NCBI GenBank assembly: GCA_038087875.1
Contig: CM075977.1
Location: forward strand, 84,506,001-84,570,000
Reading direction: 5' to 3'
Length of the DNA stretch: 64,000 nt
DNA from: Malacoraja senta
Lineage: Eukaryota
A program made the translations under genes and the position numbers. Within the stretch, counting starts at the first letter, position 1; the number at the start of each line of letters is the position of its first letter. Shown here piece by piece: positions 2,641-23,630 of the stretch. Below the pieces are notes generated by a model that worked only from the letters and a program-made list of their open reading frames with translations, did no database searches and was not told where the DNA came from.

Positions 2641-3039
2641 TATGTGGACAGATAAAGGGAGTTAATGTTTCAGGGTGAAGACCTTTCAACACAAACTTCT
2701 GATGGCAGCTCACACATCTAAAACATTAACTGACGTGACTGCAGTTTCTTTTGCTTTTGTGATGAAGCCTGGAGTACAAGGAATCTACAGAAATAGTTCA
2801 AAGCCTTCAAGAGTCCTGATCCTCTGATGTGCCTGCTGTTCCATGATGCCATCAATCAGGCCAATCAAGAAAAATAGCTTAAGAACATTTGTAAAGAAAA
2901 CCTAAAATCAGAGGTTTCAGAACCAATATCATGCGTAATGCTCAAAATGGCATCTTTTGATGAGGTGGGAATGCTGCTCTAACAGTGTTGTCCAAGATAT
3001 CTACACCTCCACTCATAATCCCATGCTCATTCTCTGCAG

Positions 3040-3212
3040 GGAAGTCGCTCAGGAGGTGGACAACAAGCTCCAACTGTTCAAAGAAAACCGGAGGAAGAAG
3101 AAAGACCGTAAAATAAAGAAGCGGATGAGGAAGGGGGATAGTTGCAGCCTGCCTGGCCTCACCTGCTTCACACACAATAATGAGCACTGGCAGACACCGC
3201 CCTACTGGAACT
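3040..3212 (+). CDS. SULF1: SULF1 exon, [57 protein letters not shown]
   Basis: Acceptor tctctgcag ends at 3039 and donor gtaagc starts at 3213. It carries the basic cluster and the [15 protein letters not shown] motif typical of SULF1/2. Confidence 0.96.
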
Positions 3213-6105: not shown

Positions 6106-6230
6106 AAGGATGTGGAGGGTCGATATATTTCACCTATTTTCTGCTTTGTTCACTTACCAGTTGGAATGCATTCAGAAATAATGCGTTCTTCAGAGAATAA
6201 CATGACAAACACTGTGCTCTCTCATTACAG

Positions 6231-6373
6231 TGGGTTCTTTCTGTGCATGTACAAGTTCTAACAATAACACGTATTGGTGTTTGCGGACCATCAATGAGAC
6301 TCACAACATCCTATTCTGTGAATTTGCCACCGGCTTTCTTGAATATTTCGACATGAACAATGATCCATATCAA
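6231..6373 (+). CDS. SULF1: SULF1 exon, [48 protein letters not shown]
   Basis: Acceptor ctcattacag and donor gtaagg; highly conserved C-terminal sulfatase segment; phase 1 in, phase 0 out. Confidence 0.97.
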
Positions 6374-7718
6374 GTAAGGAGATTTTATTTTTGTTATCAA
6401 CAATTAAAAATTGTATTAATAATAAGACAATGCAGTTGATGGAAGCCATTGATTGTGTTTATTACTTATAATACCTAGATTTATAGTCCTGATTGTTCCA
6501 TTGCTTTAAGAGAAGACATGAGGGAAGGTGACATTTGCAGCTAACAGTTATTTTGGCAATGAACGTGCCCTAAATTATATTTAATATATCAACAACTTGA
6601 TGGTGCCTAAACACAGTTCTAAGCATCTCATGCAATGGTTGTAGATAGTGGAAAGGGACACCAAAGGGATGGTTAAGAACTCTTGTCATCCATAAAAGTT
6701 AAGGCATGTAGTAGGTTTTTGGACTGGGGCAGAAAATACCTGGTGGAGCAGTAACCATAGAACCTGCAGCTGCTTGAAGGGGTAAATACAACACTGGGAG
6801 AGAAGCGGGGAGTGCAAGTGGGGAAAGACCAGGGAAGTATCTTTAAGCATAAGCAGCATTCATGTGTGTGCTTTTTAAACTGTGATTCTACTGGTTGATC
6901 ATGTGGCACACTAACATTGCAGTAATGTCACATAATCACAGACAGTCTGAAATGTTCAGTCTGCATCAGAACTTCAACGTGTTGAATGTAGTAATATTCT
7001 GCCTAACTAATTAACCATTACTGCTTTGTATGTGTGTCTCAGTGCATTCTTGAGGGTCTTTAAAATTTACACAGAGGATGGTGGTCCATGTGGAATTATT
7101 GAAGAACATTGATAGGTCTCACTGGGCAACTTTCATGCTGTAGCATAAAACTGATTTTTAGCAGTGTTTTCATGCAATCACTTGCATGACAGCTCTTTGG
7201 TCCAAAGCCTTTGCATGTACCGACTAAGTGTACAGCTTAGGAAACCGTAAGGAAAGTGCCATGTTCCGCCATGTCACCATTGTGAGGAAGAACAACATGG
7301 CTGCCTTGGCTGGTTATATTAGGAGCATGCTGTGCTTGTATGCACAGTGCTGCACAATGGGCAGCAGGTACAATTGCCAATCAATGCAAAGATGGGCAGA
7401 ACATGACAGATGAGGAACAAAATCTGTTCCATTGTCATTATAACGAGTTGTCGCGTGAGCAGGCTGGAGCACTCAGTTCATTACTAATTTCTGAGAGGCA
7501 AACGGACATCCAGATAATGAAAATAATTTAGAGAAGAGCTATTATGAACAGAGCACTTCAAAACTAAGGGCCATTGCCAGGAACAAGCCCTTAGGTCAGC
7601 CTCACTCACCTACAGCATGTACAATAATGGGGCATAAACTTACTGCTCAGCGTACTAGAAAATTGTCACTCCCCTTTTTATAAAAGTGTCTGGCTACAAT
7701 ATAAAAAGGATTAGAAGC

Positions 7719-8844
7719 GCATTTCCTCAAGATGTGCGGTATCCAACATACTTGCAATCCACATTTTGAGCGTTGGTATTGGTGTATTTTTCCAAAATTT
7801 CAATATTAATTTTTTTGCTATTATTAAACCATAATTAAAAATTGACTTTTCAGATGAGCTCAATTTGTTCCCGTCTTCCATTACCCCAAATATAATCAAT
7901 TCATTATTGGGTTCCATTTTTGTCTTAAATAATTTTGTAAATATTTCGAAAATATCACTCCAAAATCCATGAAGTTTTATACAAGAAACAAAAGAGTGTG
8001 TTATAGTTGCGTCTTAGGTTAAACATTTATCGCAAATGGGCGATATATTTGGATAAAATTTATTTAATCTTGTTTTTGCGTAATATAATCTATGTAAAAT
8101 TTTAAATTGGATTAGGTTATGTCTTGCGTTAATCGAACACTTGTGAATGTATGTCAAATACTTTTCCCATGTAGCCTTCGTAATTTTTATCAATAATTCC
8201 CGTTCCCACTCTTCTCTAATTACCTCGGTCACAGGTAAATCTATATTTAAGATACTATTATATAAATATGATATTAATTTTTGTGTATCAGCTTTTATAT
8301 TCATTACTTCTTCTAGTAAATCAGGAGTTATTTTTTGATATCCCTGTATGTATGTCTTCAAAAAATTACAAATCTGAAAATATTTAAAATAATGAGTGTT
8401 TTTCAGTTTAAATGTTAATTGTAATTCCTCCTAATAGATAAATTTGACCAATTCATAACGAGTTGGTCTCCATTTGTTGTATTTTTGGAAACATATGGTG
8501 CAAAACAGGTGTAAAAGCTAATCCGTGACTGCGGATGGTCAAGATTATAAATGATCTCCTTCTATTTTCTTTTCTTCTCTTCTCTTCTTTTATTCTCTTT
8601 CTTCTATTTTCTATGTCTCAACTTTCTTTTTTCATTCTTTATTTTTCTTTTTCACACACTATATATCTCACATTTTTCTATTTTTCATTACCTAACTTTT
8701 TTCTTTTTCTTCTTTATTTCAAAAACATTTTTAAATAAGAAGCTGTACATAAAAGGTATTATGAAAATATGATTGTATACAATTGTACTTACTTCTAATA
8801 AAATTAAAATATTTTAAAAAAAATTTAAAAAAATAAAAAATTTA
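7719..8844 (+). mobile_element. L1-clade LINE 3' fragment with 5' inversion (inverted part ~7719-8424, forward part ~8425-8844), A-rich tail and 16-bp TSD
   Basis: Minus-strand ORF2 C-terminal peptides (QFKILHRLY...CDKC...HSFVSC, AHLEEMRF) continue on the + strand as FLLIDKFDQFITSWSPF. TSD aaaaaggattagaagc at 7703-7718 and 8845-8860. Confidence 0.88.
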
Positions 8845-9479
8845 AAAAAGGATTAGAAGCATCTGATTATGACTTCAAATGTTCCAACAAATTTTATTTT
8901 GCTAACCATAGGTTACTGTTGTTATCCCAAACAAAGCAAGTAAACAGTTTTCTTGCAATGGTTGGTTACTCCTGACTATTACATACCTCATGCCTAATGC
9001 TATCCGATCCTATCCGAAACGTCGCCCATTCCTTCTCTCCAGAGATGCTGCCTCACCCGCTGAGTTACTCCAGCATTTTGTGTCCGGCTTTGGTTCTAAA
9101 ATGTCAGTTTTCTGCAGTTAAATGAAATAATTACTGAGTATTCATATGCATATGGTATGAATTTTGGCTACATACGTTTCTCTCAAAATAATTGGTGTCG
9201 TTGCTCTGTGACCCACCTGAAGTACCCCTGCTCATGTGGCAACTCATTATAGTGATAATGGAACAGATTTTGTTCCTCATCTGTCAAATTCTGCCCATCG
9301 TTCAATATCTGTCCATCGAGATAAAGTACACCCCCCTCCCACCCACCCCGCTCTCATAAAGATAAACACAACCATCCTTGGTTCTGGCATGGTATTCATG
9401 ACAATATTGTAATGTGTCTCATTCTTGCAGCCCCTGGTGAAAAGGGAAACTGAATTCTGTTTTGGTTTTCTGGTTTCAG

Positions 9480-9603
9480 CTGACAAATACAATTCACATG
9501 GTTGACCGGGAAATACTTAATCAGTTGCACATACAGCTAATGGAATTAAGAAGTTGCCAAGGACACAAGCAATGCACTCCACGGACCAAGGGGGCAGAAA
9601 CAG
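9480..9603 (+). CDS. SULF1: SULF1 exon, [41 protein letters not shown](G/E); 124 bp, ends in phase 1
   Basis: Acceptor tggtttcag and donor gtaaca; contains the [16 protein letters not shown] motif. Not shown in the ORF track; translated by hand. Confidence 0.95.
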
Positions 9604-10640
9604 GTAACACTTGTAATTCACAGATAGCACACTGATTTGTTCTAAGCTCCCTTCACAGGGAGCCTTCACCTCGCAGTGTGAAATTAATCATAAAACTAAA
9701 TTAATTCCTGGTGTTGTCCTCATATGTCAATTTTCCTGAATGGTATCTTTGCATCAGTGAAATTTAATTAATCCCCTCGTTTTTCCTCATTTTTACCAGA
9801 CAAAATCCTCATGGGAATCTGAAATATTTCTAATGGACTAAAACACTGCAGCACACTTTATTCAAAAGCCCCATAAAGATTATATTTTGACAAAGGTGAT
9901 CCTATCTTGAGAGTCCAATGTAGAACACAATGTCACATGGAACTTGACAGAACAGAACACAATTGGACACACACGATTACTTGTTTTTTTAAACCTGCTG
10001 GTCCACTTTATGTTTTCCTGTCAGATATAAAAAATTACACATTTTCTGCTTTCATTTTCAAAAATATTTAATTCTTGCTGTACATCTCAGTATCTAAATG
10101 TTGATAGTTATTAACAGTGGGAAAAGTATAATTACAGACATTTAACTGCAAGGGAGCAGTCATCTAAATGTCACTTTTTAAATCAGTTAAAAGAACACAG
10201 AAGCTTTCGATTGACATTGACACTTTTGATTTGGGATAATTCATGAAAGCCTTTGTTTTTTGCCCTGAAGCAGCCGGCAAATCCAGACTAATAATCCCAA
10301 TGTTCAGTTTGTATTTTCTATGATTGCAGAGCCTTGAAATCAGATTGATTTTAAAAAAATAAGTGGTCAACGTATTTTCTGCAACTAATTTAATGAAGAA
10401 TTTCATTAAATTCATTTAGCTCTCCTTTTCAACAAGAATGTGTCATATTTTTAAATTGCCCAAGTGTGTAGGCGAATGATAGAAACTGGCTTTTGTTGGT
10501 TGGGGTTTGTTGAAAATGCGAGCAAATACAATGGGATTCATGTAGGATTACTGTAAAAGGGTGATTGACGATCAACGTGGAATCAGTGAGCCGAAATGGG
10601 TTTCTCTCCATGACTCTTGTGGAAATTATATAAAGTGTAA

Positions 10641-11387
10641 AGGGCCTGTCCCACTAACGTGACTTTTCAGCGACTGTCTTCGACCTTCAAGCTCGAGGGC
10701 ACTCACCTGAAAAACCTCGAGCTGGATCGACCGTCAGCAATGAAACCGCGAGCTGGATCGACCAACCGCACACACACGCACAAACACATCGCAAAGGCGG
10801 GGGCCAGGGAAAGCGGGGGAGCGCTGTCTGAAATTCACATGGTGCAAAGCCAAGGTGACACCCGCGATGAACAGGAAGGTAAAGGATGGCTGGCACAGTT
10901 ACTGTAAGTCCTTTAGAGAACGTGGAGAGGGGAGAGAAGGGGGGAGAAGGGGGAGAAGGGGGGGAGAAGGAATGGAGACACTTTTTAAGAATCCAGACAA
11001 CTTATAATAAAGTTTAGCGGGCATTTAAATTACCGGTCGGTTTTCCTTGGTTCTGAAAACTCCAATGAGCCAATTAAAATGCTCGGTCAGCAAAGGAGAT
11101 TGCCTACGGTTGCCCTCGACTGCCTATAACTACATAGCGACCCCACTCCACTGCACTACGAGTTCAAAAGAACAATGCCGAACAATTTTTACTTGCGGAA
11201 AAATTTTCGGCATGCTGTAAAATTTTCCTCGACCAAACTGAGGCCGCGAGTAGGAGGAAACTTCCCTCGAGCATGAAGGAGAATTACAGTGACCTCCTAG
11301 GACCACGTGTCGACCATGCTGTGAGTTTGAGTCGAGCGCAAATTCGTCTAAACTCGCAAATTAGGTTGCCGCAGTGGGACAGGCCCT
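10641..11387. mobile_element. Non-autonomous PIF/Harbinger DNA transposon (MITE)
   Basis: Perfect 15-bp TIRs agggcctgtcccact (10641-10655) and agtgggacaggccct (11373-11387), TAA on both flanks; CpG-rich interior. Confidence 0.88.
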
Positions 11388-11840
11388 TAAGAAAGTGAAA
11401 CAGTGCAATAATATATACAGTTATTTGGTAGCATCAAGCTCACCCTATTGTTGAAACAGGTTAAAATGAGGCACACATGTGATGTCAAGGAGGTAATTTT
11501 GACATTTGATCACACAAGATTGGTAATGGAAAACTGCTCACCCATTTTATAGCTTTCCCAATGTTTATTTTTATTGAAGCCACTGGGAATATGGTCAGGA
11601 GTGATTGATACGAGCTGCCGTTTTTCTATCAGCCCTTTTACACATTCATTCAAAGTCAAAATTTACCAACATAGTCTTGTATATGATTTCACTGCTGATA
11701 AAGTATATACAACAGCTTATTTTCTAAACTGATCTAGTTTACAATGAAACAAGGTGGCAGTTGTTCTCCCTTTTAGTTTGGATATACAAGCCATGTTCTC
11801 CTGGTTATTTCTCATGTCAAAGGTTACTTTTCCTTTCTAT

Positions 11841-12130
11841 TTTAACCACAATCCATTTTTCCTCAGGTAATGCATGGACAGATACAATGTGAATAATTTT
11901 ACTGTTCTAAAATCATTAACATAAATTACTCTTGTATTTTCCTAATCAGGAAATAAAGATGGAGGAAGCTTTGATCAGCACAGGTATCCATACTTTTTAT
12001 TCTCTTCAACAACTTTCATTCCGTCTAATTGCATGAGCTGGCCCATTGAAGCTTCGTTTACTTTGATTGTATGTTCCATCCAGCATTCTTTGATGCATGA
12101 TAGCTCATTCTTTAACAAATAACAACTAAT
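11841..12130 (+). promoter_or_regulatory. Cluster of splicing-regulatory motifs around the SULF1 microexon (RBFOX TGCATG x3, QKI-type ACTAAT/CTAAT)
   Basis: TGCATG at 11871, 12030 and 12094; ACTAAT at 12125 (also 12490); CTAAT inside the acceptor at 11942. Confidence 0.6.
11950..11983 (+). CDS. SULF1: SULF1 34-nt penultimate microexon, (G)NKDGGSFDQH(R); frame-shifting cassette
   Basis: Acceptor ttttcctaatcag and donor gtatcc; resembles SULF1 GNKDGGSYDLHR; phase 1 in, phase 2 out. Confidence 0.92.
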
Positions 12131-13536
12131 TCTTATTTCAGACCATCTGTTTTTATTCAACTCTACTCTTTGGGATCCACAAGAGTCCTAATAATTCGCT
12201 TTCGTTGTGATCCCAGCTCAGTTGTTGCTCCTTGAAGGTGAAAGTAATTTCAGAGTGAAGAGAAATGGACTGATTCCTACCATTCCCTCCATCTCTTTCA
12301 AACACATATGTCCATATAAATGTACGCACACACATTTTACACTTGCACGCTAACACAGTCCCATGATTGCTTGAAAACTGAACCGTGTTCATATGTTGTA
12401 CCCCATATTGGAACCAAATCACCTAGAGAATATTAACAAACTTTAAGCACAAATTATGTTCAAAGCAAATCCAAATCTGTGGTCTTTACACTAATTTAAA
12501 AACCATTCAGTTTGAAACCATGAAATTGTCCCTGGTCCTGGATGGAATATTATTATTGTTCAAATTTACCAATGTCGAAGATAAGTTTTGAGTATGAATT
12601 AGACTTGTGGTTCTTTTCTAAGTTACTTTTCCAACCTTTTATCGCTTTGCAACTGGTAAGCTTCACATTCACTTTCTATCTGGCAGATAGCTTCTAAACT
12701 CTAATATGAATTTACTAAATTGCATTAACCAATAAAAGCACAAACTTCCACTCGTGGCGTAGAATTTGACAGAATATCTATCGGCAGTACCTACACAATA
12801 CTTGATGGTGCTGCTCAGGGAAGAGAGGAAGTGTTTCCACTGACTACTCAACCACATGTCACATGTTCCTCTCCCAGTTTCCAGAGTATGGAATCAGAAA
12901 CAGCTTAACTAACCCGCACTCTAAGCTCCAAAATTGTGTGTAGCACAGTGTAGCACAAGGGGAAGAAAATAAGGGGGGAAACTATTAAATAGACAACTAG
13001 AAATTCCAGTAATGTGGTCCTTATACTCAATGACACTTGGAGGAAGTGAGTGCAAATAGGTGGAAATAATAAAGCATTTAATAAATTAATTAAATTATCC
13101 TATCATATACTGCAAAGAATCACACTACAATAGGTATATTTTATTTGAGATAATCTAACATATAAATATATTTATGTAGACTCAGAAAATGAATAATGTA
13201 CCAAGATAACCTTAATCTTAGAATCTAATTGTTTGATCTTTGCCTCTTTTTATTCCTGCTACCTGGTTGCCAGGCTACAGCAGCATCGAAAGTGGCCAAA
13301 GTTGAGGAGGCCGAGCTTCAAGTCCTTGTGAGTGAACAAAAGCTATTCTTTAGTAACCAGTAGGGAAGCGATCACTGTCGCAACTTAACTCTTGAGTTTT
13401 TAATTCACGTGCATCCCCAAATCAATGTTGTAGTTGTGTAACACTTCTATTTCCACTTCTTCTTCCTGAAAATGTACCAGCAGCAAAATATTTATTATTT
13501 CCTTATAATTGCCGAAGAACCACTCAGAAGTGATGG

Positions 13537-13742
13537 TAGACAAAAATGCTGGAGAAACTCAGCGGGTGAGGCAGCATCTATGGAGCGAAGGAAAGAGGCA
13601 ACCCTTCTTCTAACCCGAAACTGGGTTTCGACCCGAAACGTTGCCTATTTCCTTCGCTCCATAGATGCTGCCTCACCCGCTGAGTTTCTCCAGCATTTTT
13701 GTCTACCTTCGATTTTTCCAGCATCTGCAGTTCCTTCTTAAA
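13537..13742. mobile_element. Penelope-derived near-perfect hairpin element with ~16-bp TSD
   Basis: Arms gtagacaaaaatgctggagaaactcagcgggtgaggcagcatctatggagcgaaggaaa and its reverse complement. TSD cactcagaagtga(t/c)gg at 13521-13536 and 13743-13758. Confidence 0.85.
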
Positions 13743-14379
13743 CACTCAGAAGTGACGGTGGCTGTGATTTTGCAGCTGTGGTTGCAAGGAATTGATTCCT
13801 TCTGGTATTATTGGGGTATAAAACAATGACATCTCTGTTAACACACACATCAATGGTATGCTTTCAGGGTGCTTTCAAATGGACATTGCTGTGGCAACGC
13901 ATAAAAGATTTGGTGGTGTTGTGTCTCTTACTACTGTTTTATCATTCTCAAAGAATGATAAGGTGGGATGAGCGAGAACATGGCTCCTGTTGGAGAAATG
14001 GGATGACTGTAGAGAAGGATGTGCTAGTTCAGTCCTGGACTTCTTCAAGTCTTCCCACAGAACAATCTAATAACTGGAGACAAAAGCCTTTTAATGAGGA
14101 GTTTGAGTTTAGTTAGTTGTCACATGTACCTAGGTACAGTGAAAAGCTCTTGAAGCGTGCTAACCAGTCCAATGACTAATGGCTATTCTTCAATATCCCC
14201 CTGCCATTTATTGCAAAATAACCATGGCAAAACTCTTTATTATCTTTCCTTGCTGACTTAATTTGGGGAATAGAATGCATTAGTATGTTGCAAAGCATCC
14301 TTAGCTAATAAATTAGGTATGAGTATGAGTATTGAGCAGGTGACAACTAAAATAAATTTACAGACAACAAGCAGTCAGC

Positions 14380-15285
14380 ACCAGGCTCGCACCAGGGTCT
14401 CTGCCATACCCCACAACACTGCTCTCTCTCCCCATCCCCCCACTCACAACAAGGGCAGAGTCCCCCTAGTCCTCACCTTTCACCCCACCAGCCGTCACAT
14501 ACAACAAGTGATCCTCCGTCAGTTTCGCCACCTCCAACGTGACCCCACCACTCGCCACATCTTCCCATCTCCCCCCATGTCTGCCTTCTGCAAAGACCGC
14601 TCCCTCCGTAACTCCCTTGTCAATTCTTCCCTTCCCTCCCATACCACCCTCTCCCCTGGTACTTTCCCTTGCAACTGCAAGAGATGCAACACTTGTCCCT
14701 TCACCTCCCCCCTCGACTCCATTCAAGGACCCAAGCAGTCGTTCCAGGTGTGACAGAGGTTCACCTGCATCTCCTCCAACCTCATCTATTGCATCCGCTG
14801 CTCTAGATGCCAGCTGATCTACATCGGTGAGACCAAGCGGAGGCTTGGCGATCGTTTCGCCGAACACCTCCGGTCGGTCCGCAATAACCAACTTGACCTC
14901 CCGGTTTCTCAGCACTTCAACTCCCCCTCCCATTCCGTATCTGACCTCTCTGTCCTGGGTCTCCTCCATGGCCACAGCGAGCAACACCGTAAATTGGAGG
15001 AAATGCACCTCATATTCCGCTTGGGCAGTCTACATCCTGGGGGCTTGAACATTGAATTCTCCCAATTCTGCTAGCCCTTGCTGTCCCCTCCCCTTCATCA
15101 GCCCTCTGGTTGTCTCCTCCCCTCCCCCAGCCCTCGGGCTCCTCCTCCGCCTTTTTCCTTTTTTCCTTTCTTCTCCCCACCCCCTATCAGTCTGAAGAAG
15201 GGTTTCGGCCCGAAACTTTGCCTATTTCCTTCGCTCCATAGATGCTGCTGCACCCGCTGAGTTTCTCCAGCATTTTTGTGTACCT
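14380..15285 (+). mobile_element. Penelope-like element 3' fragment: GIY-YIG endonuclease plus terminal repeat with hammerhead-like core
   Basis: Translation gives RVPLVLTFHP...CNCKRCNTC...NLIYCIRCSRCQLIYIGETKRRLGDRFAEH...HFNSPSH. There is an in-frame TGA at 14751, and ctgaagaagggtttcggcccgaaa at ~15192. Confidence 0.9.
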
Positions 15286-15966
15286 ACCAGTCCTTAGCAC
15301 ACATCAGTTTTGCTCTTTGCTGTTATATCTGCTAGTTTCACATGTATTGATCAAGTTATTGTAGACTAATGGTCATGTCCACATACACGTGTACTGTTTA
15401 CCTCCTGATTACAGTAGGGGCCTGTTCCTGTAAACTATTTGTGACCTGGACAGTTTGCAAGTTGGAAATGCATCGAGAACCATTCCCACATGGTAGACAA
15501 TGTCTGCAGTCCCAAAATAGCTGGGAGGGACCTGACCCATATTTCGCCATTGTCCTGATATTACACTGCCCTGATATGACCATTCAAGATGTTAAAGTTG
15601 TTTCCCCTGAGGTATTAGCAGAGGTATTAGCCCATTAGTTCCAATTTGGCATCCCACAGAATAATTTCATATATTAATATGTTAGGATTATTGTAATTTG
15701 TAAATGGATTCTGCCCACTCTTCTCACCAACCTGACCTCAAGGACCCTCGTAGCTCTGTCTGAGTTACATGGATTCAAGTTTCACTCCAGGCCCTGTAGC
15801 AAAGAATCCAGAACACATCTGCCTTACCAACAGGATGAGATGAGATATGTGCTATTGAGTAAATGTAAAATATTTCTGAAAACCACCTGAAAGAAAATCT
15901 GAGTAGTGAGTTTGTTGGCCATGCCTTAAACTGAAGGTGTACTGAAACATGCAATCCGGTTATTTA

Positions 15967-16277
15967 GGGCAGCACAGTGGTGCAGCAGTAGAGCTGTTGC
16001 CTCACAGTGCCAGAGACCCAGGTTCGATCCTGACCTCGGGTGCTGTTTGTGAGGCGTTTGTATGTTCTCCCTGTGACTGCATGGGTTTCTTCGGATGCTC
16101 TGTTTTCCTCCCATATTCCTAAGACGTGCAGGTCTGTAGGTTAATTGGCTTCTGTACATTGCCATGAGTGCGTACGGCATAGAACTAGTGAATGGGTGAT
16201 CTAAGGTCAGTGTGGACTCGGTGGGGCAAAGGGCCTGTTTCCACACTGTATTTCTAAACTAAACTAAACTAAACTAA
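15967..16277 (+). mobile_element. Full-length tRNA-derived V-SINE (HE1-like) with CR1-type 3' end and (ctaaa)n tail
   Basis: A-box tggtgcagcagtag, B-box ggttcgatcc, V-domain, then gggcctgtttcc...ctaaactaaact. Confidence 0.85.
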
Positions 16278-17234
16278 TTCCATTAATGCTTATGGGTGTT
16301 TGAGCTTGTTCTTATAAATTCCTGTGAGATTCCCTGTGGGGTGAAGTTTGTGATGTTCTGCAGGTCTGTGCATTGTATAAGAAACCTTGTAAGCACACAA
16401 GACATTTCATGTATTCTCTTTCATATCAGAACATTCCAGATGCACAGTCCCTAATTGTTCATCTGGGGATCATTCACTTGGATGGTTGTCCATGATTTGA
16501 ATAATCACAGGCAGTCCATCCTCATTTTGCCAAGATCTCCTTGACAGCCCCACCAACAATCTGCAGTTTCAAAACATATTGGTCTATTTTAGCAGCAACA
16601 TTTAGGAGTTAAATGAAAATAATTGACAGACCTGCCCATATCCTTCCTGCATTTCCAATATCATTATCTATCCTTTCACAGTATGTTCATCTTCCTGTCG
16701 GCACTCAGTGGAAAGATAGCATTGATCGTTGTTTAATGGAGATTGTACAGTACATACAGCAGATGAACCAAAGTGATCAGTTCTGGGCTTGTCTATTGCA
16801 CTGGTGACAATGCTAGAGCATAAATCACTTCATGTCAGTAAATAACAGCTCATTCTGCCAATGGATTGACATCATTCTCATGCATTGTCCATTTCACTAA
16901 TTAAACTTTTCTTTAGCATGTAGGTTCATCGAGTTGCTGCTACTGCATGGCTTTTCTGTTTATCCTGCACATTTAACGATGAGTCGTCTTTCGCTGCCTT
17001 TTCCCTAAGGAGAAACCATTTCATCCAGCTAGAAGATCATTTGCCGCCTCACCTCGTGTTAATTTTCTTCAGATTTGCTTTGATTTTTAGCTCTAACTTT
17101 CTCACGGGCTGCGCAGTTTATCTAACAGGATCTCACAGATTGCCATATACTTCATTTCTACTTCCCTGGCTAGTAACATGGTTTTCTTAGATTGCCATTG
17201 TGATATATTATATTTATAACAGATATTGTAAGTA

Positions 17235-17735
17235 TTACATGGATAGGACCGCTTTGGAGGGATATGGACCAAATGTGGGAAGGTGGGACTAGTGTAGCTG
17301 GGGCAAGTTGGGCCGAAGGACCTGTTTCCACACTATCGCTGTATGACTCTATGACTCTGCTATACAAATAGTGGTTGAAGAAATTGCATGGGATTAATTT
17401 TGAATTTTGGGCAGGAGTAAGGATATTTATTCATGGGCACCCATTTGTGCATTTGAGACAATCTCATTCAATCCCGGTGGCTAGTTGCTGGGCTTTGCCG
17501 AACATCCTAGTGCAGTTTGGTAGATTCAAAGTTGAATCAAGGCAGCCCTCCGGGAGGTAGATCACCTTGGGTTGTAGGGATGGGAAGAGGCAGTGATCAA
17601 AGAACAGCAACAACCTATGAGGAGAAGCCAGGAGATGGGGTTGAGGTGGAAAATTACATCAGCCATGATCGAATGGCAGAGCAGACTCGATTAGCCGAAT
17701 GGCCTAATCCTGCTCCTATGTCTTATGGTCTTATT
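17235..17735 (+). mobile_element. Two short CR1 3'-end fragments (~17235-17357 and ~17615-17735)
   Basis: gagggatatggaccaaatg...gggccgaaggacctgtttcc...(ctatgact)n; and atcagccatgatcgaatggcagagcagactcg...cctgctcctatgtcttatgg. Confidence 0.7.
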
Positions 17736-18066
17736 GTAATGAGCTATGGAAGAGCAGTTCTATTTTGCAGTCCACAAAAGTAATTTGATACCTATCTTCA
17801 CTAACCTCATCAATTCGCAACTTTGGGCTTTGGTTAACCCTCTCCAAGTGAAGTGCCACACCATATTTGGCCACATTACAAGACCATTACTACTCTATTA
17901 AGGCAAGGCAGCAGCAATTAATATAGTTCCCAATTAGTTTAAAATATGAGGGGAGCTTTCCAATGTAATTTTTTTTGAGAATGTATTTTTTTGATAATTA
18001 ATGTAACTTAAAAGCTGTGCATTAAACTGGTATTGTGAGATCCCTCCTATCAACTCCGTTTTTTAT

Positions 18067-19024
18067 GGCGGACTCACAAAAATTAATATCATATTTATAT
18101 AATAGTATTCTTAACAGAGAATTGCCATCAACAGAGGCAATTAGAGAAGACTGGGAAAAAGAATTAATGACAAAAATTTCTAAAGAAACATGGGAAAGGT
18201 ATTTGATATATATACATAAATGTTCTATTAACGCTAGACACAATTTAATTCAATTTAAAATATTACATAGATTATATAATTCAAAAGTTAGGTTGAATAC
18301 ATTTTATTCAAATATTTCTCCCATCTGTGATAAATGTCTTTCTCAAAACGCCAATATCACACATTCATTCGTTTCTTGCACAAAACCTCATGGATTTTGG
18401 TTTGATATATTTGATATATTCACTAGTTTATTTAAGATAAAAATGGAACATTGAAATTATTATCTTTTGAGTAATAGATGGGAACAAATTAAATATATCC
18501 CAAATTTCATTTTTTAATTATGGTTTAATAACAGCAAAAAAACTCATACTTAAATTTTGGAAAAATGCTACTATGCCAACACTCAAATGTGGATTGGTAA
18601 TATGTTGGAAACTGCCCACTTGGAAGAAATGAGACTCCTCCTAATAGACAAACAAGACCAATTCTTAACGAGTTGGGCTCCATTTATTGACCTTTTGGAT
18701 TCATGTGGTGCAACAGTATCGTAAAATTAAAAATTCTGGATTTGGGCGAATAATGATCAAGAATATAAAAAAGCATTGACTTGTGGCGAGGGAGAATCTC
18801 CTTTCTGCTTCACTTTCTTACTTATTTATTTTCTTTACTTCACATTCACTAGACTTTTCTTTACTCTTTACTACTTCTTTCTTTCTCATTTCTTTCTAAA
18901 AAAAAAGGGAAGTTGTACAAAGAATGTTATAATAACTTTGGGAACCTGTAAAAAGGTACCATCAAAATGTAATGTACGTACTTCTAATAAATAAAATATT
19001 TAAAAAATAAAAAATAAAAAAAAC
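18067..19024 (+). mobile_element. L1-clade LINE 3' fragment, same family as 7719-8844, not inverted
   Basis: ORF 18035-18454 is near-identical in protein to the other copy; aataaa plus A-rich tail; probable TSD ctcc(g/a)ttttttat at 18054-18066 and 19025-19037. Confidence 0.88.
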
Positions 19025-20559
19025 CTCCATTTTTTATTTCCATTGCATTCAAAGTGCTGGATTTGATTTCTGGACATTGGTTGCAATGGAAATGAAAAAT
19101 GGAGTTGAGAAGAAGAATCCCACAATGCCAGTTCAATGCCCTTTTTAAAAAAAAATTAATGAAGGCTCGACATGTTATCTACACAGTTTATAATTTTAAT
19201 GCTGAAACAAATGCTGCAAAGCAGCTACCTGACCTCTTCTTGACCTCGCTCTCTTTTCATGGTTTAAGAAGAGATCGGCTATGGTTTGCCTCAACTCTGA
19301 TTTTGTCTCTATTTTCCTAAAAGCACAGTTTGTCTCTTTAGCCTGTAATGATATTTTTTTTATCTTGGTCAAGCTTGACAATATGTCTTCTGATTTCAGT
19401 TTTGTTTATCAGGTATGGTTTTGACATTGTTGTTTCTATAAAATCTGGTAATAAATACATGTCAAAAAGAATTCTAATGGAAATGAAAATCAAGGAATTT
19501 CCATAAAAATTATAAAGCTTATTTAAACTCCACTGGTGAAAAATCAAATGCATTCTTTTCCCCAAATCAGGCAGTTCAATCCCTGTGTTTCCCTGGCACA
19601 GTCTGATCCAATACACTCCCAGCCAGTGCTCCATTCTACCCCTGTAAACATAAGCTAATCCCAATTTCCCCAACCTGTGACATAACCTGCAGCAAGCCCA
19701 TTTGTTCCATCACCTGCACTCACCGACCTACACCAGCTCCCAGTTATGCAACACGATGATTTTAAAATCCTTATCCTTCGTTTCGCTCCCTACAAACCCT
19801 TGCCTCTTCCTTCTCTCTCTTAACTCATTCATCCATTTCTGGAAACCTGCATCAGTATTACGGTATGTGTCAGGATGTCAAATCCTGTGACAAATATGGG
19901 TTGTTTTATTGCATTCTAGGTACTATACAAACACAAGTTCTTGTGGTTGATAAAGCTCTTGTGGAGTGATTGTTAACAGCAAGAGGAAAGCTTCAACTTC
20001 CAGATTGACCACTCTATATACATTCAAAGGAAAGGATGAGATTCCTGATAGATCCCTACATTATATTCCTTTATGCCAAAGATTTGAGAAAGTAAACAAA
20101 GTAAAATGCTGCAGATGTTGGAAATAGTCAAAGTTTGTGAAGAAGGAAACAAAGTTAAGTTTGTATATATGTGATCTTTCGCTGGAATTGAAGACAGCAG
20201 CGATTAACATCTTATAAACCAACAAGGAGCTGGGGAAATGGTGCAGGCAGATGTGAGGTGGTTTGGAGAGTGTTGAGGAAGGCAGTGTGAGCATGGAGTG
20301 ATCTGTGCTTGGACAGTGAGCAAGAGTGATTGAATCATAATATGGCAGAAAAAAACTGTTTGTGGCAAAGAAGATGCAAACAAGACAATCTTGGGGATGA
20401 GCTAAATAGAATCCCAGTTTGGGGATAGAATAGAGCTGTACAAGTAACATACGTTTTGCAGAGATCAAGTATAAAGACAATTGAGGTAATTTATTTAGCT
20501 TTCCTGACATTCAACCCAGACATAGACTTTGAATGCTAATCAAAATGAAACTCTGGGTG

Positions 20560-20832
20560 GTGGAATCGAGAACTAGACGACATAGGTGAGAGGGAAAATA
20601 TTTAATTGGAACCTGAGGAACAACTTTCTCACACAGAGAGTGGAAGGTATATGGAGCAAGCTGTCAGAGGGAGTTGTTGAGGTAGGTACAATAATAGCAC
20701 TTAAAAGATATTTGAACAGGTACATGGTTGGGAAGCTTTAGAGGGATATGGGCAAAAAGTAGGCAAATGAGACTAGTTTCGATAGGGTATATTGGTTGGC
20801 ATGGACGGGTTGGGCCATATGTATGACTCTAG
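20560..20832 (+). mobile_element. Degenerate CR1 3' fragment
   Basis: gaatcgagaactaga...acacagagagtgg...gagggatatggg...gggttgggcc. Confidence 0.7.
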
Positions 20833-22728
20833 GAATGATGTCTAGGTCCTGCTGCATGCAGGCATTGACTGATTAAGCTGCTGAGGAATTGCCGATGAAA
20901 TTGAACTTTGTAGAATTGTTAGTGAACTTCCACACATCTGACCTTACGATAAAAAGAAAGTCATTGATGGAGTAATGAATGATCCTTGGGCTTTGGATAC
21001 CTCCCTGAGGAACTCCTGCAGTGATATGCTGAGGTTGGGATGCCCTTCAACAATCATAACCATCAACCTTGGTGCAGGTACAACTCCCTTTCATCCCCAG
21101 TCCGTTAAACCAGAATTCCTTGATGCCACATTTAGTCAAGTGTTGTCTTAATGTTAAAGACAATCACTGTCACCTCACATCTGGAATTCAGCTCTTTGAT
21201 TTACATTTTGACCAGGCAGTGGTAAGGTCTTTATAAAGTGCTTCTGGCAAAGTGCAGAAGGTTATTGGTGATGAAGTGCCGCTTGATAGCACTGTAAAGA
21301 ACACCTTCCATCCTCTTGTTGGTGGTTGACAGTTGACTAGGCGGTTAGTTCAGCTTTTCTATTGGATTTGTTTTGCTTTTAGAAAAACGGGATATTCCTG
21401 AGTAATTTTTTTGTTGGGTAGAGGAGGGTTAGTAATTGTACTGAAATCGTTTGACTCGAGATGTTGTTAACACTAAATTGCACTGGGATGTTATATGATC
21501 CAAAATCCTATGCTGTGTCCAGTACTCTCAACTATTTCTTAATGAAGATTATAATTTCCTAATATCACGTGGCATGATCAAGTTGACTGGGTAATGTGAT
21601 CTGTGGTTGTGAGGTCTCCTGAGGAAGCTGAGATGGATTATTCAAGCATCTACTTGCCAATTCTGTCTGAACGTGCAAGCTATTCCTCCATCGTTGTCTT
21701 TGACACTCACTTGCTGGCCCCCATTTCTTCGGGATGGAGATATTCTTGAAGCCTCCTCTCCCCCACCATTAACCTTTAATTGTGCTCTACCTTACACCAC
21801 CAGAAGTGACAGGTCTGCAGAGCTTTGGCCTGATCCATTGGTTATAACTTCACTTGACTCTCTCTAATGCATGCTATTTCTGCTGCTTAACAAGCATGCA
21901 TTCCAATCCCACCAGGTTGCTCCTGTCTCCACATTTAAGGGAAAGACTGAAACCAAATATTCAGAAGAGTAGAATGCAAAGGTGTTAGAGCTACTGATTG
22001 GGGAAGGACATGCTGTTACCCATATCTTAAGCAATGCCATTGACAACATGAGGATAATGGGTATTACAATCTGGAAGTAGATGCTAAATGTCAATTCTGA
22101 GATATTGTATGTATTAAATAAGACATTTGTGTTAAACTGGAGATGTTTTTTGTTGAACTAAACTTTCTGTCAAATATGTATTAAACAGGGACAAGGAAAT
22201 AAATAAAATAAAGTAAAGGTGTATATATATTTATCGACATGTGTGAGCAGAGGCATCATTGCATGTGTGAGCAAGAAATAATATGGATATTATCCTAAAA
22301 TAATATGATCATTAATGTCGTTTTTTTTGTAAAACGTATCTGATTTCACGGTAATCTAATATTAAGGGCAGTAATAAAGTGGATTTTTTTTTTAATAACA
22401 ACGTGGTTGCTGTAAAATCAAAATGGTCACATATTTGACATTTCCTTTACAGAATCTGCTTTTGACATTTGTGACTTTGTTTTATTAATCATTTCTCTCT
22501 GAGCATTCTTCTAGTGTCTCATGTTGGGGTGTGTGCTTTCAATCTGCTTCTGCTGTGCAACTTTGTTAATGGCTTTTTGTAGTGAGATGTGCTGTCTCTA
22601 ATTTTGCTTTGAATAACCAGCTGATAGTGGAGCAGATGCATGTCTGCACACAAGCACAGTGCTTCAGCAACTATGGATGGTCGACGTACGTGAAAATAAA
22701 CTATTTCAATCTTTGTTTCTGCCTGCAG

Positions 22729-22759
22729 AGGACAGCTATGGGATGGATGGGAAGGTTAA
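22729..22759 (+). CDS. SULF1: SULF1 terminal exon, canonical frame (R)GQLWDGWEG*
   Basis: Acceptor tttctgcctgcag ends at 22728; canonical SULF1 C-terminus GQLWDGWEG; TAA at 22757-22759. Confidence 0.95.
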
Positions 22760-23630
22760 TCCACTTAAACTGCCAAACTTAACGGAAAATATCAACTGGG
22801 GAGAACTTGAAAATTTGTACAGTGTGGATGAAAGCTTGTTTGAACACAGGCATAATTATAGCCTTAGCCTTGGTGACTGGACTAATTACTGGAAGGATGT
22901 AGATAGAATGTTTGCACTGCTTAAGACTTTTTCTGGACACATTAAAACTTCTGAGGCCATTGCGCTAAATAAGGGCGGGACTCTTGATTTGAGCATTGAC
23001 ACCACAGCACTGGACATGGCACCAACTCCATTGCCTATTTTTGGAAATGTGTTCTCTACTGAGCCCGAGGATGAATCTAGTGGCACGACTGTATGGGAGG
23101 CAACAGAAGCACAACCTGTTGTACTTGCTGACTCTGATGGTACAAATATGAGCACAACCATTACAAGTGGTGAGCGTCCACAGGAGGAAGCAATAAACAA
23201 CAATCATATACCCGATAAGCATTTATCAAACACTGAATGGTGGCAACATAATCGGACAAAACAGTTGACAAAGGAATGGGGGGAGCTGGAATATGACCAC
23301 GGTTTCAGTGGAAATGGACTGGTGGAAATGGAAACCAGAAATAGCTTCTTTCTTCAGCAAAGTGCCACATTTCCGTCACCCAGCATCCAGAATGAAGTGG
23401 AGGAGAAGGAGGACATATTTGAAGGCAAAACATATCTTCCTGTTGGCTCTATGAGCCACCTTTATTCCAGAGCTTTCACTGTTCCTCGAGAAACCAGCGA
23501 CAACGAGAAATTGGCAAACGTCCAGCTTCAGGAAGAGCCTGAGAACAGTGGCGAAGGAGGACAAGAGAGCTTCAGTACAGAAGGCAGTGCCTTGCCCCCT
23601 CAATCCTTTCATCAACTCACAGCCCATTGA
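22729..23630 (+). CDS. SULF1: SULF1 terminal exon, alternative frame: 300-aa C-terminal tail EDSYGMDGKVNPLKLP...HQLTAH*, used if the 34-nt exon is skipped
   Basis: Longest ORF in the window (part of track ORF 22659-23630), non-repetitive. The phase-1 G at 9603 plus AG at 22729-22730 gives GAG (Glu) exactly in this frame. AATAAA follows the stop. Confidence 0.78.

Follow-up and report, generated by a model that had tools for sequence, protein, structure and literature searches.

A 34-nucleotide microexon as a putative reading-frame switch to a long, conserved C-terminal tail of SULF1

SULF1 and SULF2 are, to our knowledge, the only extracellular enzymes known to edit heparan sulfate after its synthesis. 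By doing so they modulate Wnt, FGF, BMP, Hedgehog and VEGF signalling during development, in repair and in cancer. As far as we know, functional work on SULF1 has to date used the 871-amino-acid (aa) form of the protein. Here we describe the 3' end of SULF1 in a stretch of 64,000 nucleotides (nt) from Malacoraja senta (GenBank assembly GCA_038087875.1, contig CM075977.1, positions 84,506,001 to 84,570,000 of the forward strand), hereafter the window, in which skipping of a 34-nt microexon would exchange the canonical end of the enzyme for an alternative C-terminal tail of about 300 residues.

Splice variants of SULF1 have been published before, namely quail QSulf1B and human variants without exons 6, 7, 8 and 18. 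Like the form considered here they arise by alternative splicing of the same gene, and functional antagonism has been proposed for them. However, they are shorter, catalytically impaired and affected in internal exons, and none has a C-terminal extension. The paralogue SULF2 provides a further comparison. Human SULF2 carries a chondroitin/dermatan sulfate chain at Ser583 in the sequence GGDFSGTGG, with the acidic cluster EDQDDKD ahead of it (PMC13405426; bioRxiv 10.1101/2021.01.04.425218; PMC10721642), and this chain raises the extracellular abundance and the activity of the enzyme (PMC13405426). SULF1 was reported to be free of chondroitin sulfate unless the SULF2 sequon was grafted into it (PMC13405426; bioRxiv 10.1101/2021.01.04.425218; PMC10721642); we assume that the studies reporting SULF1 as unmodified expressed the canonical form. 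At the level of mechanism, cassette exons of non-triplet length that give rise to alternative C-termini or to dual-coding exons were surveyed in PMC13247117. The SULF1 locus shares with this class a cassette whose length is not a multiple of three and which toggles the downstream frame, two stops that should both escape nonsense-mediated decay, and a disordered tail with short linear motifs. It differs in the unusual length (300 codons) and the age of its alternative frame, which is found in the paralogue SULF2 as well. SULF1 is not mentioned in the accessible parts of PMC13247117 and its supplements, nor in those of the supplements of the PhyloCSF paper PMC6886504.

The long form itself is present in databases. 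RefSeq and Ensembl list automatic models of ~1100-1150 aa with the same junction in >70 species, as the original prediction had suspected. The RefSeq Sulf-1 isoforms X1 and X2 of Amblyraja radiata, and X1 of Bos taurus, Sus scrofa, Macaca mulatta, Corvus, Anser, Latimeria and others, derive from the same gene and share the junction (...AET/EDSYG, the slash marking the splice) and the tail; they differ from the present case in being automatic predictions in other species, and none was found to be curated or experimentally studied. Calling the tail "hidden", as that prediction did, is too strong, because RefSeq lists the long form as isoform X1 in the sister skate A. radiata. Its view that the isoform had not been functionally characterised agrees with our literature search, which turned up only the shorter SULF1 variants and, some relevant subscription papers lying outside its coverage, no paper describing or testing the long tail. 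The mechanism is thus of a known kind and the isoform is already in RefSeq and Ensembl for many species. New here are the evidence for selection, a pair of transcripts with both forms, the homology to the SULF2 tail and the parallel between a DFSG.G motif of the tail and the glycosaminoglycan site of SULF2.

We propose that the microexon acts as a reading-frame switch of SULF1. When it is included, which is the form in most public contigs, the last exon would be read as GQLWDGWEG up to a stop and would close a short, conserved C-terminus of 21 residues. When it is skipped, exon 9480-9603 would join position 22729, the frame would move by one base and the last exon would be read for 300 codons. 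The resulting protein of ~1120-1145 aa would lose the canonical last 21 residues and gain an acidic, cysteine-free and largely disordered tail. We give this explanation as a whole a probability of about 85%.

The window is free of N and holds the last six exons of SULF1 on the plus strand (Table 1). Their translation yields the conserved C-terminal region of SULF1 and its canonical end, ...GNKDGGS.D.HRGQLWDGWEG before the stop, which identifies the gene as a SULF1 orthologue. Three transcript contigs from a related skate (L002-L004, 97% nucleotide identity) splice segments 3034-3212, 6231-6373, 9480-9603 and 11950-11983 to 22729 onward, and run unspliced from 22729 to about 24978. With the microexon included, the C-terminal tail reads GNKDGGSFDQHRGQLWDGWEG (21 aa); joining 9603 directly to 22729 gives GAG (Glu) followed by 299 codons and a TGA. 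As 34 nt is not a multiple of three, inclusion or skipping of the microexon picks the reading frame of the last exon. The exon and junction coordinates of the original prediction, the base G left at 9603, the 21-aa canonical tail and the 300-codon frame all hold. Its description of a dual-frame terminal exon is supported, but the genuine overlap amounts to only 31 nt, the remaining tail being 3' untranslated region (UTR) of the canonical mRNA. Both stops lie within the exon beginning at 22729 and therefore neither mRNA is expected to be a target of junction-dependent decay, as had been foreseen; the contigs of the relatives contain no further splice up to ~24978. An AATAAA was also correctly placed after the tail. 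It is neither the sole 3' end signal nor necessarily the main one, as transcripts of the relatives extend to ~24978, just past a distal AATAAA.

Table 1. Features of the 3' part of SULF1 in the window (all on the plus strand; residues are numbered from the first residue after the junction Glu)
Feature	Position	Strand	Remarks
124-nt SULF1 exon	9480..9603	+	ends in phase 1 with one base (G) left; boundaries backed by related-skate contigs L002-L004
Three TGCATG (RBFOX-type) hexamers	11871, 12030, 12094 (span 11871..12099)	+	79 nt upstream, 47 and 111 nt downstream of the microexon
34-nt cassette microexon	11950..11983	+	ag upstream; 5' splice site CAG/gtatcc; canonical frame NKDGGSFDQH plus the first two bases of an Arg codon
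Last exon	from 22729	+	preceded by ...ctgcag
Two-frame overlap at start of last exon	22729..22759	+	canonical (R)GQLWDGWEG, stop TAA 22757-22759; alternative (E)DSYGMDGKVN
Alternative tail	22731..23630	+	299 codons and TGA 23628-23630; preceding junction codon G(9603)+AG(22729-22730) = Glu
N-module, residues 1-75	22731..22955	+	NW.ELE.LYSV.ES...R.NYSLSLGDWTNYWKDVDRMFALL; homologous to start of SULF2 alternative tail
NHIP, skate version of NNDIPE motif	23202..23213	+	N158 and P161 invariant
FSGNGLVE, conserved as (D)FSGNGLTELE	23304..23327	+	S193, G196 and E199 invariant; Ser-Gly in acidic context
EDIFEGKTYLP, conserved as EDIFEDQxYLP	23409..23441	+	P237 invariant; L236 in at least 90% of sequences
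EGSA, conserved as EGS[AG] (EGS[AG]..PLS)	23580..23591	+	S286 invariant; E284 and G285 in at least 90%
Proximal AATAAA	23664..23669	+	34 nt past the tail stop; read through in contigs of relatives
Distal AATAAA	24957..24962	+	~20 nt before end of longest related transcript contig

The frame of the tail is open over 337 codons (22617-23627), and the second longest open stretch in the six frames of the window has 187 codons, which bears out the statement that this is the longest open reading frame (ORF) of the 64 kilobases (kb). Across 200 sequences simulated from the window with a second-order Markov model, the longest open stretch had a mean of 169 codons (standard deviation 21) and a maximum of 258. 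A chance ORF is ruled out by the 337 codons observed against this maximum. The remaining two frames contain 8 and 31 stops across the 897 nt of the tail.

The tail is widespread among jawed vertebrates. A phmmer search of its 299 residues against 1.84 billion representative proteins gave 38 matches, and all those examined were SULF1 or SULF2 tails, either fused to the enzyme or as free ORFs on transcript contigs. No match was found outside jawed vertebrates in this single-sequence search. A word-indexed search limited to full-length proteins detected the tail in 75 full-length SULF1 models (~900-1190 aa). Among cartilaginous fishes the carriers are Amblyraja, Hypanus, Narcine, Heterodontus, Cetorhinus, Scyliorhinus and Chiloscyllium; in the coelacanth, the 1118-aa long form is the sole protein listed. 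Further models come from bichirs, characiforms, catfishes, axolotl, dozens of birds and several marsupials, and placental ones from marmoset, owl monkey, macaque, gibbon, lemur, loris, pig, ruminants, shrews, fur seal and kangaroo rat, with additional cluster members in Bos taurus (X1), Macaca mulatta (X1), Papio (X1), Pongo (X2) and others. RefSeq labels the long form Sulf-1 isoform X1 in Amblyraja, Bos, Sus, Macaca, Papio, Corvus, Anser and others. The junction ...E[TVA]/EDSYGMDGK is present in nearly all models checked, and the tails measure 259-304 aa. The nine cartilaginous species found all keep the frame intact (298-302 aa). A tail 98% identical to that of the window belongs to the A. 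radiata Sulf-1 isoforms X1 (XP_032875236, 1145 aa) and X2 (XP_032875242, 1120 aa), the window tail aligning to residues 822-1120 of X2. The original prediction had given five fragments as human sequence in this frame: all five occur verbatim in P0147, an ORF found on 327 public contigs, and nearly verbatim in gibbon and macaque models. With >70 SULF1 models sharing nearly always the same junction, its proposal that the frame is conserved across jawed vertebrates is supported. Vertebrate divergence times put the retention of the long isoform at >400 million years.

Several Logan/ENA contigs (P0011, P0016, P0018, P0027, P0030, P0031) have mammalian-type tail ORFs of 58-196 aa, some of them altered at otherwise invariant positions (e.g., KDVDR to RAVYR). 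No murid rodent was seen among the long gene models found. Decay of the tail in some mammalian lineages may account for this, or the short contigs may be fragments.

Selection on the tail frame was estimated from the window and nine other loci (three related-skate transcripts, the catshark genomic locus, four mammalian contigs and one bird contig). Nei-Gojobori ratios of non-synonymous to synonymous divergence (dN/dS) were 0.31-0.54 in most pairs, and a few of the most diverged pairs, in which dS is saturated, gave 0.18-0.25. When the identical alignments were shifted by one or two bases, the ratio rose to about 0.7-1.3, so that the dN/dS check proposed for the tail frame came out in its favour. 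Counting sites, the ratio of non-synonymous to synonymous differences (pN/pS) in the tail frame was 0.42-0.55 overall, with Fisher p values down to 1e-8: 0.43 between window and catshark (294 codons, one-sided p 1.8e-8), 0.48-0.54 in three mammal-mammal pairs (260-267 codons, one-sided p 1e-4 to 6e-7) and 0.55 between bird and mammal (261 codons, one-sided p 1e-8). The window and a related skate differ by 13 substitutions and no indel over the 902 nt of the ORF, against 33 substitutions and six indel events in the next 1348 nt of 3'UTR; the 13 changes (8 non-synonymous, 5 synonymous) are too few alone for a ratio test. Taken by its sequence, the tail frame is a true coding sequence under protein-level purifying selection across jawed vertebrates. 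Selection on it is weaker than on the enzyme body, which fits a disordered region studded with short motifs; two shrew-like transcripts share 90% nucleotide identity in the enzyme body and 80% in the tail.

Both mRNA forms occur in at least one lineage, a mammalian one. The 4251-nt transcript contig L001 (run SRR33136232, closest in sequence to shrew models) contains a single ORF of 1115 aa which is uninterrupted from the SULF1 signal peptide, across the skip junction, to the end of the tail. Contig L006, from a related species, is collinear with L001 save for 34 extra nt at the skip junction, GAAATAAAGATGGCGGAAGCTATGACCTTCACAG, and encodes a canonical protein of 865 aa. Free tail ORFs starting in the microexon were found on 7 skate contigs and, in the case of P0147, on 327 contigs, while the P0005 cluster has 37 member sequences.

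Two observations on gene models concern other splice choices of SULF1. In the newt Lissotriton helveticus, Sulf-1 isoform X1 (P0067, 1095 aa) lacks the 124-nt exon, and its microexon is translated in the alternative frame (...DPYQ/ELKMEEAMICTEDNYG) before the same tail is reached. Since 124 and 34 both leave a remainder of 1 on division by 3, either skip yields the same frame shift; the newt route is either a second natural path or a prediction artefact. Besides forms of ~866 aa and ~1145 aa, many rays and sharks have RefSeq Sulf-1 models of 876-889 aa, which suggests an additional small alternative exon elsewhere in the gene.

A related tail exists in SULF2. In gar, sturgeon, pike, salmonids, cyprinids, characiforms, catfishes and bonefish, Sulf-2 or Sulf-2b models (~870-1080 aa) continue past ...CNPRTRNLE into an alternative tail. 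The long models, such as Sulf-2 X4 of Lepisosteus oculatus (1050 aa), Sulf-2-like X2 of Acipenser ruthenus and the Sulf-2b of salmonids, cyprinids and catfishes, have the same architecture as long SULF1, their tail following ...RSCKGHKQCNPRTRNLE. Its beginning, W.ELE.LYRLDE...SLEDW.NF..VDRMF.LL, resembles that of the SULF1 tail, and comparison of the two tail profiles with hhalign (alignment A1 for SULF1, A3 for SULF2) matched 72 columns at 42% identity, with a probability of 99.3% and an E-value of 9.7e-21. Homology is confined to this N-terminal module (N-module). Beyond it, the SULF2 tail is unrelated to that of SULF1: it has the hydrophobic segment AIYLTTLATPALLLREAG, a run rich in Glu and, at its C-terminus, HCDCSDF, and lacks the motifs NNDIPE, FSGNG, EDIFEDQ.YLP and EGS[AG]. 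As the N-module is common to both alternative tails, the sequences suggest that a tail with this module predates the SULF1/SULF2 duplication. The SULF2-type tails P0277, P0276, P0266, P0267, P0033 and P0035 have a conserved segment of their own, ALVSSTSQS.SAIYLTTLATPALLLREAGAE.L..ALGL, which is hydrophobic and possibly helical, followed in the same tails by a run rich in poly-Ser and Glu and by a C-terminal H.C.C(S/N)(D/E)F.

Other ways of accounting for the open frame were weighed against the frame switch. The tail could be a separate protein translated from the canonical mRNA, through a downstream ORF that overlaps the SULF1 stop and begins either at the Met of DSYGMDGK or at an AUG in the microexon (MEEALISTEDSYG... 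in skates). The inclusion form makes up most of the public transcript contigs, and ORF callers report a free tail protein of 265-308 aa from such an AUG (P0145, P0004, P0005, P0147 and others). Yet the first in-frame AUG shifts by lineage, opening with MEEA... in skates, frogs and teleosts and with MIHT or MTYT in birds and mammals, with none before MDGK elsewhere; the Met of MDGK is a Thr in frogs and several teleosts, and the upstream AUG derives from Asp-Gly codons of the canonical frame. Conservation begins at the splice junction and not at an AUG, bearing in mind that the first nine tail residues are not independent evidence because the overlapping GQLWDGWEG frame constrains them too. A free product would lack a signal peptide, although N-glycosylation sequons and Ser-Gly sites, functional only in the secretory pathway, are retained. 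Reinitiation past an 870-codon ORF is unexpected, and an mRNA of the skip form exists (L001). We consider a separate protein improbable. The tail is probably made only as a fusion behind the SULF1 signal peptide and secreted, since it has no position-conserved start codon and no signal peptide of its own and its N-glycosylation sequons are conserved. Programmed ribosomal frameshifting on the canonical mRNA near GQLWDGWEG would also produce a fusion, and the 31 nt of overlap just ahead of the canonical stop would offer it a place. No slippery heptamer or stimulatory structure was noticed, though without a systematic search; a spliced mRNA encoding the fusion directly exists, and ahead of the overlap the gene models have the residues of the skip junction. 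This route is the least probable of all those considered.

Alternatively, the tail may be an ancestral C-terminus whose frame has stayed open although the skate lineage no longer uses it, the skip being splicing noise and the long RefSeq models a product of longest-ORF preference. The three skate contigs, all of the inclusion form, show no skip junction, shortened ORFs in some unlabelled contigs suggest that decay is possible, and selection is only moderate. An unused frame, however, would not remain open for ~300 million years. Skates and catsharks diverged roughly 300 million years ago, and the frame is intact in all nine cartilaginous fishes, with the pN/pS of 0.43 between skate and catshark over 294 codons (p = 1.8e-8) and no tail indel between two skates against six in the adjoining UTR; we rate such a relic as quite improbable. 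Conservation could also stem from an RNA-level function of the 3'UTR, in regulatory elements or structure, with the open frame a mere by-product: the region is 3'UTR in the major mRNA, SULF1 3'UTRs are long, and parts of the neighbouring intron are likewise conserved between skate and catshark. But constraint at the RNA level cannot make synonymous change outweigh non-synonymous change in a single frame, would neither exclude indels nor hold them to multiples of three, and would not keep a frame of 260-300 codons open at 30-40% amino-acid identity from sharks to mammals. The frame-specific dN/dS and the contrast in indels between ORF and UTR rule it out as the cause of conservation, and we leave it only a very slight probability.

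Some results weigh against a frame switch with a functional long isoform. Selection on the tail is only moderate (ratio about 0.4-0.5), and several unlabelled contigs have tail ORFs shortened to 58-196 aa, which may mean decay in some lineages. The skip form appears on only one or few public contigs. Since inclusion-form ORFs far outnumber it there, the long form is probably a minor or tissue-restricted isoform. No skip junction was found in skate RNA, the three assembled skate contigs all including the microexon. Mapping of four runs from related skates (one of raw RNA reads, three of contigs) to 6150-12100 of the window covered intronic repeats only, with a depth of zero on exons 6231-6373, 9480-9603 and 11950-11983, and is uninformative on skipping; the predicted skip in the skate lineage rests on RefSeq models, which are automatic predictions. 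AlphaFold2 found no confident fold, and the glycosaminoglycan idea set out below is a motif resemblance only, with an acidic cluster before FSGNG that is weaker than EDQDDKD of SULF2.

Alignment A1, of 24 tails from ray to marmoset, has a mean column identity of 37% and consists of sharp conserved islands amid a variable background. One island is the N-module (~72 residues), NW.GLE.LYSVNES.YE.R.NY.LSL.DWTNY.KDVDRMFALL, with R40, W50, N52, K55, V57, D58, F61, A62 and L63 invariant. At the other end, EGS[AG] sits 8-16 residues ahead of the stop in all 24 tails. The tail of the window is rich in Ser and Thr and strongly acidic (49 Asp and Glu against 19 Lys and Arg, net charge about -30). No cysteine is present in 21 of the 24 tails. 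N-glycosylation sequons are found at residue 16 (18/24) and residue 33 (19/24), and S-[GA] at residues 193 (23/24) and 286 (24/24). S193 and S286 thus stand in a net acidic tail, with the SULF1 signal peptide upstream in the fusion models, as sequences for glycosaminoglycan attachment would. AlphaFold2 modelling of the tail from the 24-sequence alignment gave helices only at residues 23-29, 47-78 and 169-184 and a mean predicted local distance difference test (pLDDT) score of 45. The full 1145-aa Amblyraja isoform, modelled with 29 long isoforms, reached a mean pLDDT of 31 and was poor even in the sulfatase domain, hence unusable. With this low score and only three helices, the tail is predicted to be mostly disordered. 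Pfam returned no family for the tail at E up to 1, the A1 profile had no match to PDB sequences at E up to 1, and Atlas feature searches retrieved only low-scoring, unrelated clusters.

As to what the tail may do, its most likely function, proposed tentatively, would be that of a regulatory appendage. The polyanionic tail might compete with heparan sulfate for the basic hydrophilic domain of SULF1, or a glycosaminoglycan chain at the S193/S286 sites might compete likewise; either route could change how the enzyme is retained at the cell surface, how it diffuses or how active it is, much as SULF2 is affected by its chondroitin sulfate chain. Removal of the conserved canonical end of 21 residues may matter by itself. 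The tail shares with the human SULF2 site the core Asp-Phe-Ser-Gly-x-Gly and nearby acidic residues, in a paralogous enzyme; in SULF1 the acidic residues lie on both sides of the DFSG.G core, and a second invariant E-G-S-[GA] is found near the end. The human SULF2 site differs in lying in the hydrophilic domain of the canonical protein and in having a denser acidic cluster upstream, the SULF1 site being a candidate from sequence alone. A more specific picture, which we hold to be rather doubtful, is that the long isoform is a glycosaminoglycan-bearing proteoform of SULF1. A chain on the serines of FSGNG and/or EGS[AG] would control the spread and activity of the enzyme, the tail would be an ancient module from before the SULF1/SULF2 duplication, and tissue-specific skipping, perhaps under RBFOX control, would toggle between a cell-bound and a proteoglycan form.

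If functional work used only the 871-aa form, a second proteoform has been overlooked, one without the conserved last 21 residues and with an acidic tail of 260-300 residues and possible glycosaminoglycan sites. C-terminal tags, C-terminal antibodies and polymerase chain reaction assays on the last exon junction would all miss it. The long isoform is a candidate explanation for the context-dependent and contradictory effects of SULF1. Were the glycosaminoglycan reading true, the rule that SULF2 is modified with chondroitin sulfate and SULF1 is not would hold for the 871-aa isoform only, and the question to test is whether SULF1 can be a proteoglycan, as SULF2 is. As a case of splicing, the locus would be a clean and very old example of a microexon serving as a reading-frame switch.

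The surroundings of the microexon fit a regulated exon, as its 5' splice site, gtatcc, departs from the usual consensus gtaagt/gtragt. The TGCATG hexamer has a background of 0.42 per kb in the window, so that about 0.1 would be expected in the span flanking the microexon, against three observed. A single QKI-type site was detected. In the 10.7-kb intron between microexon and last exon, blocks 13178-13354, 13747-13910, 15994-16133 and 16886-17017 align to the SULF1 intron of the catshark, the first at 85% identity over 178 nt, above the coding tail (79%). These blocks may be splicing or transcriptional regulatory elements.

Several intronic features of the window appear to be repeats. An element of ~70 nt at 9014-9084 attracts enormous depth from RNA reads and contigs in four runs of related skates, with loose ends on both sides and many variants, and behaves like a very high-copy transcribed short repeat, similar to a short interspersed element. 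Coverage is also repeat-like at 7543-8935 and 10528-11522. In the raw RNA run, 37 reads link 7718 to 8424 on opposite strands, which suggests an inverted repeat or a hairpin-forming transcript of a repeat family and not SULF1 splicing. Finally, overlapping ORFs of 144 aa (plus strand) and 180 aa (minus strand) at 14274-15008, where the GC content of the intron is highest (0.475) and the GC skew strongly negative, may be the remnant of a transposon.

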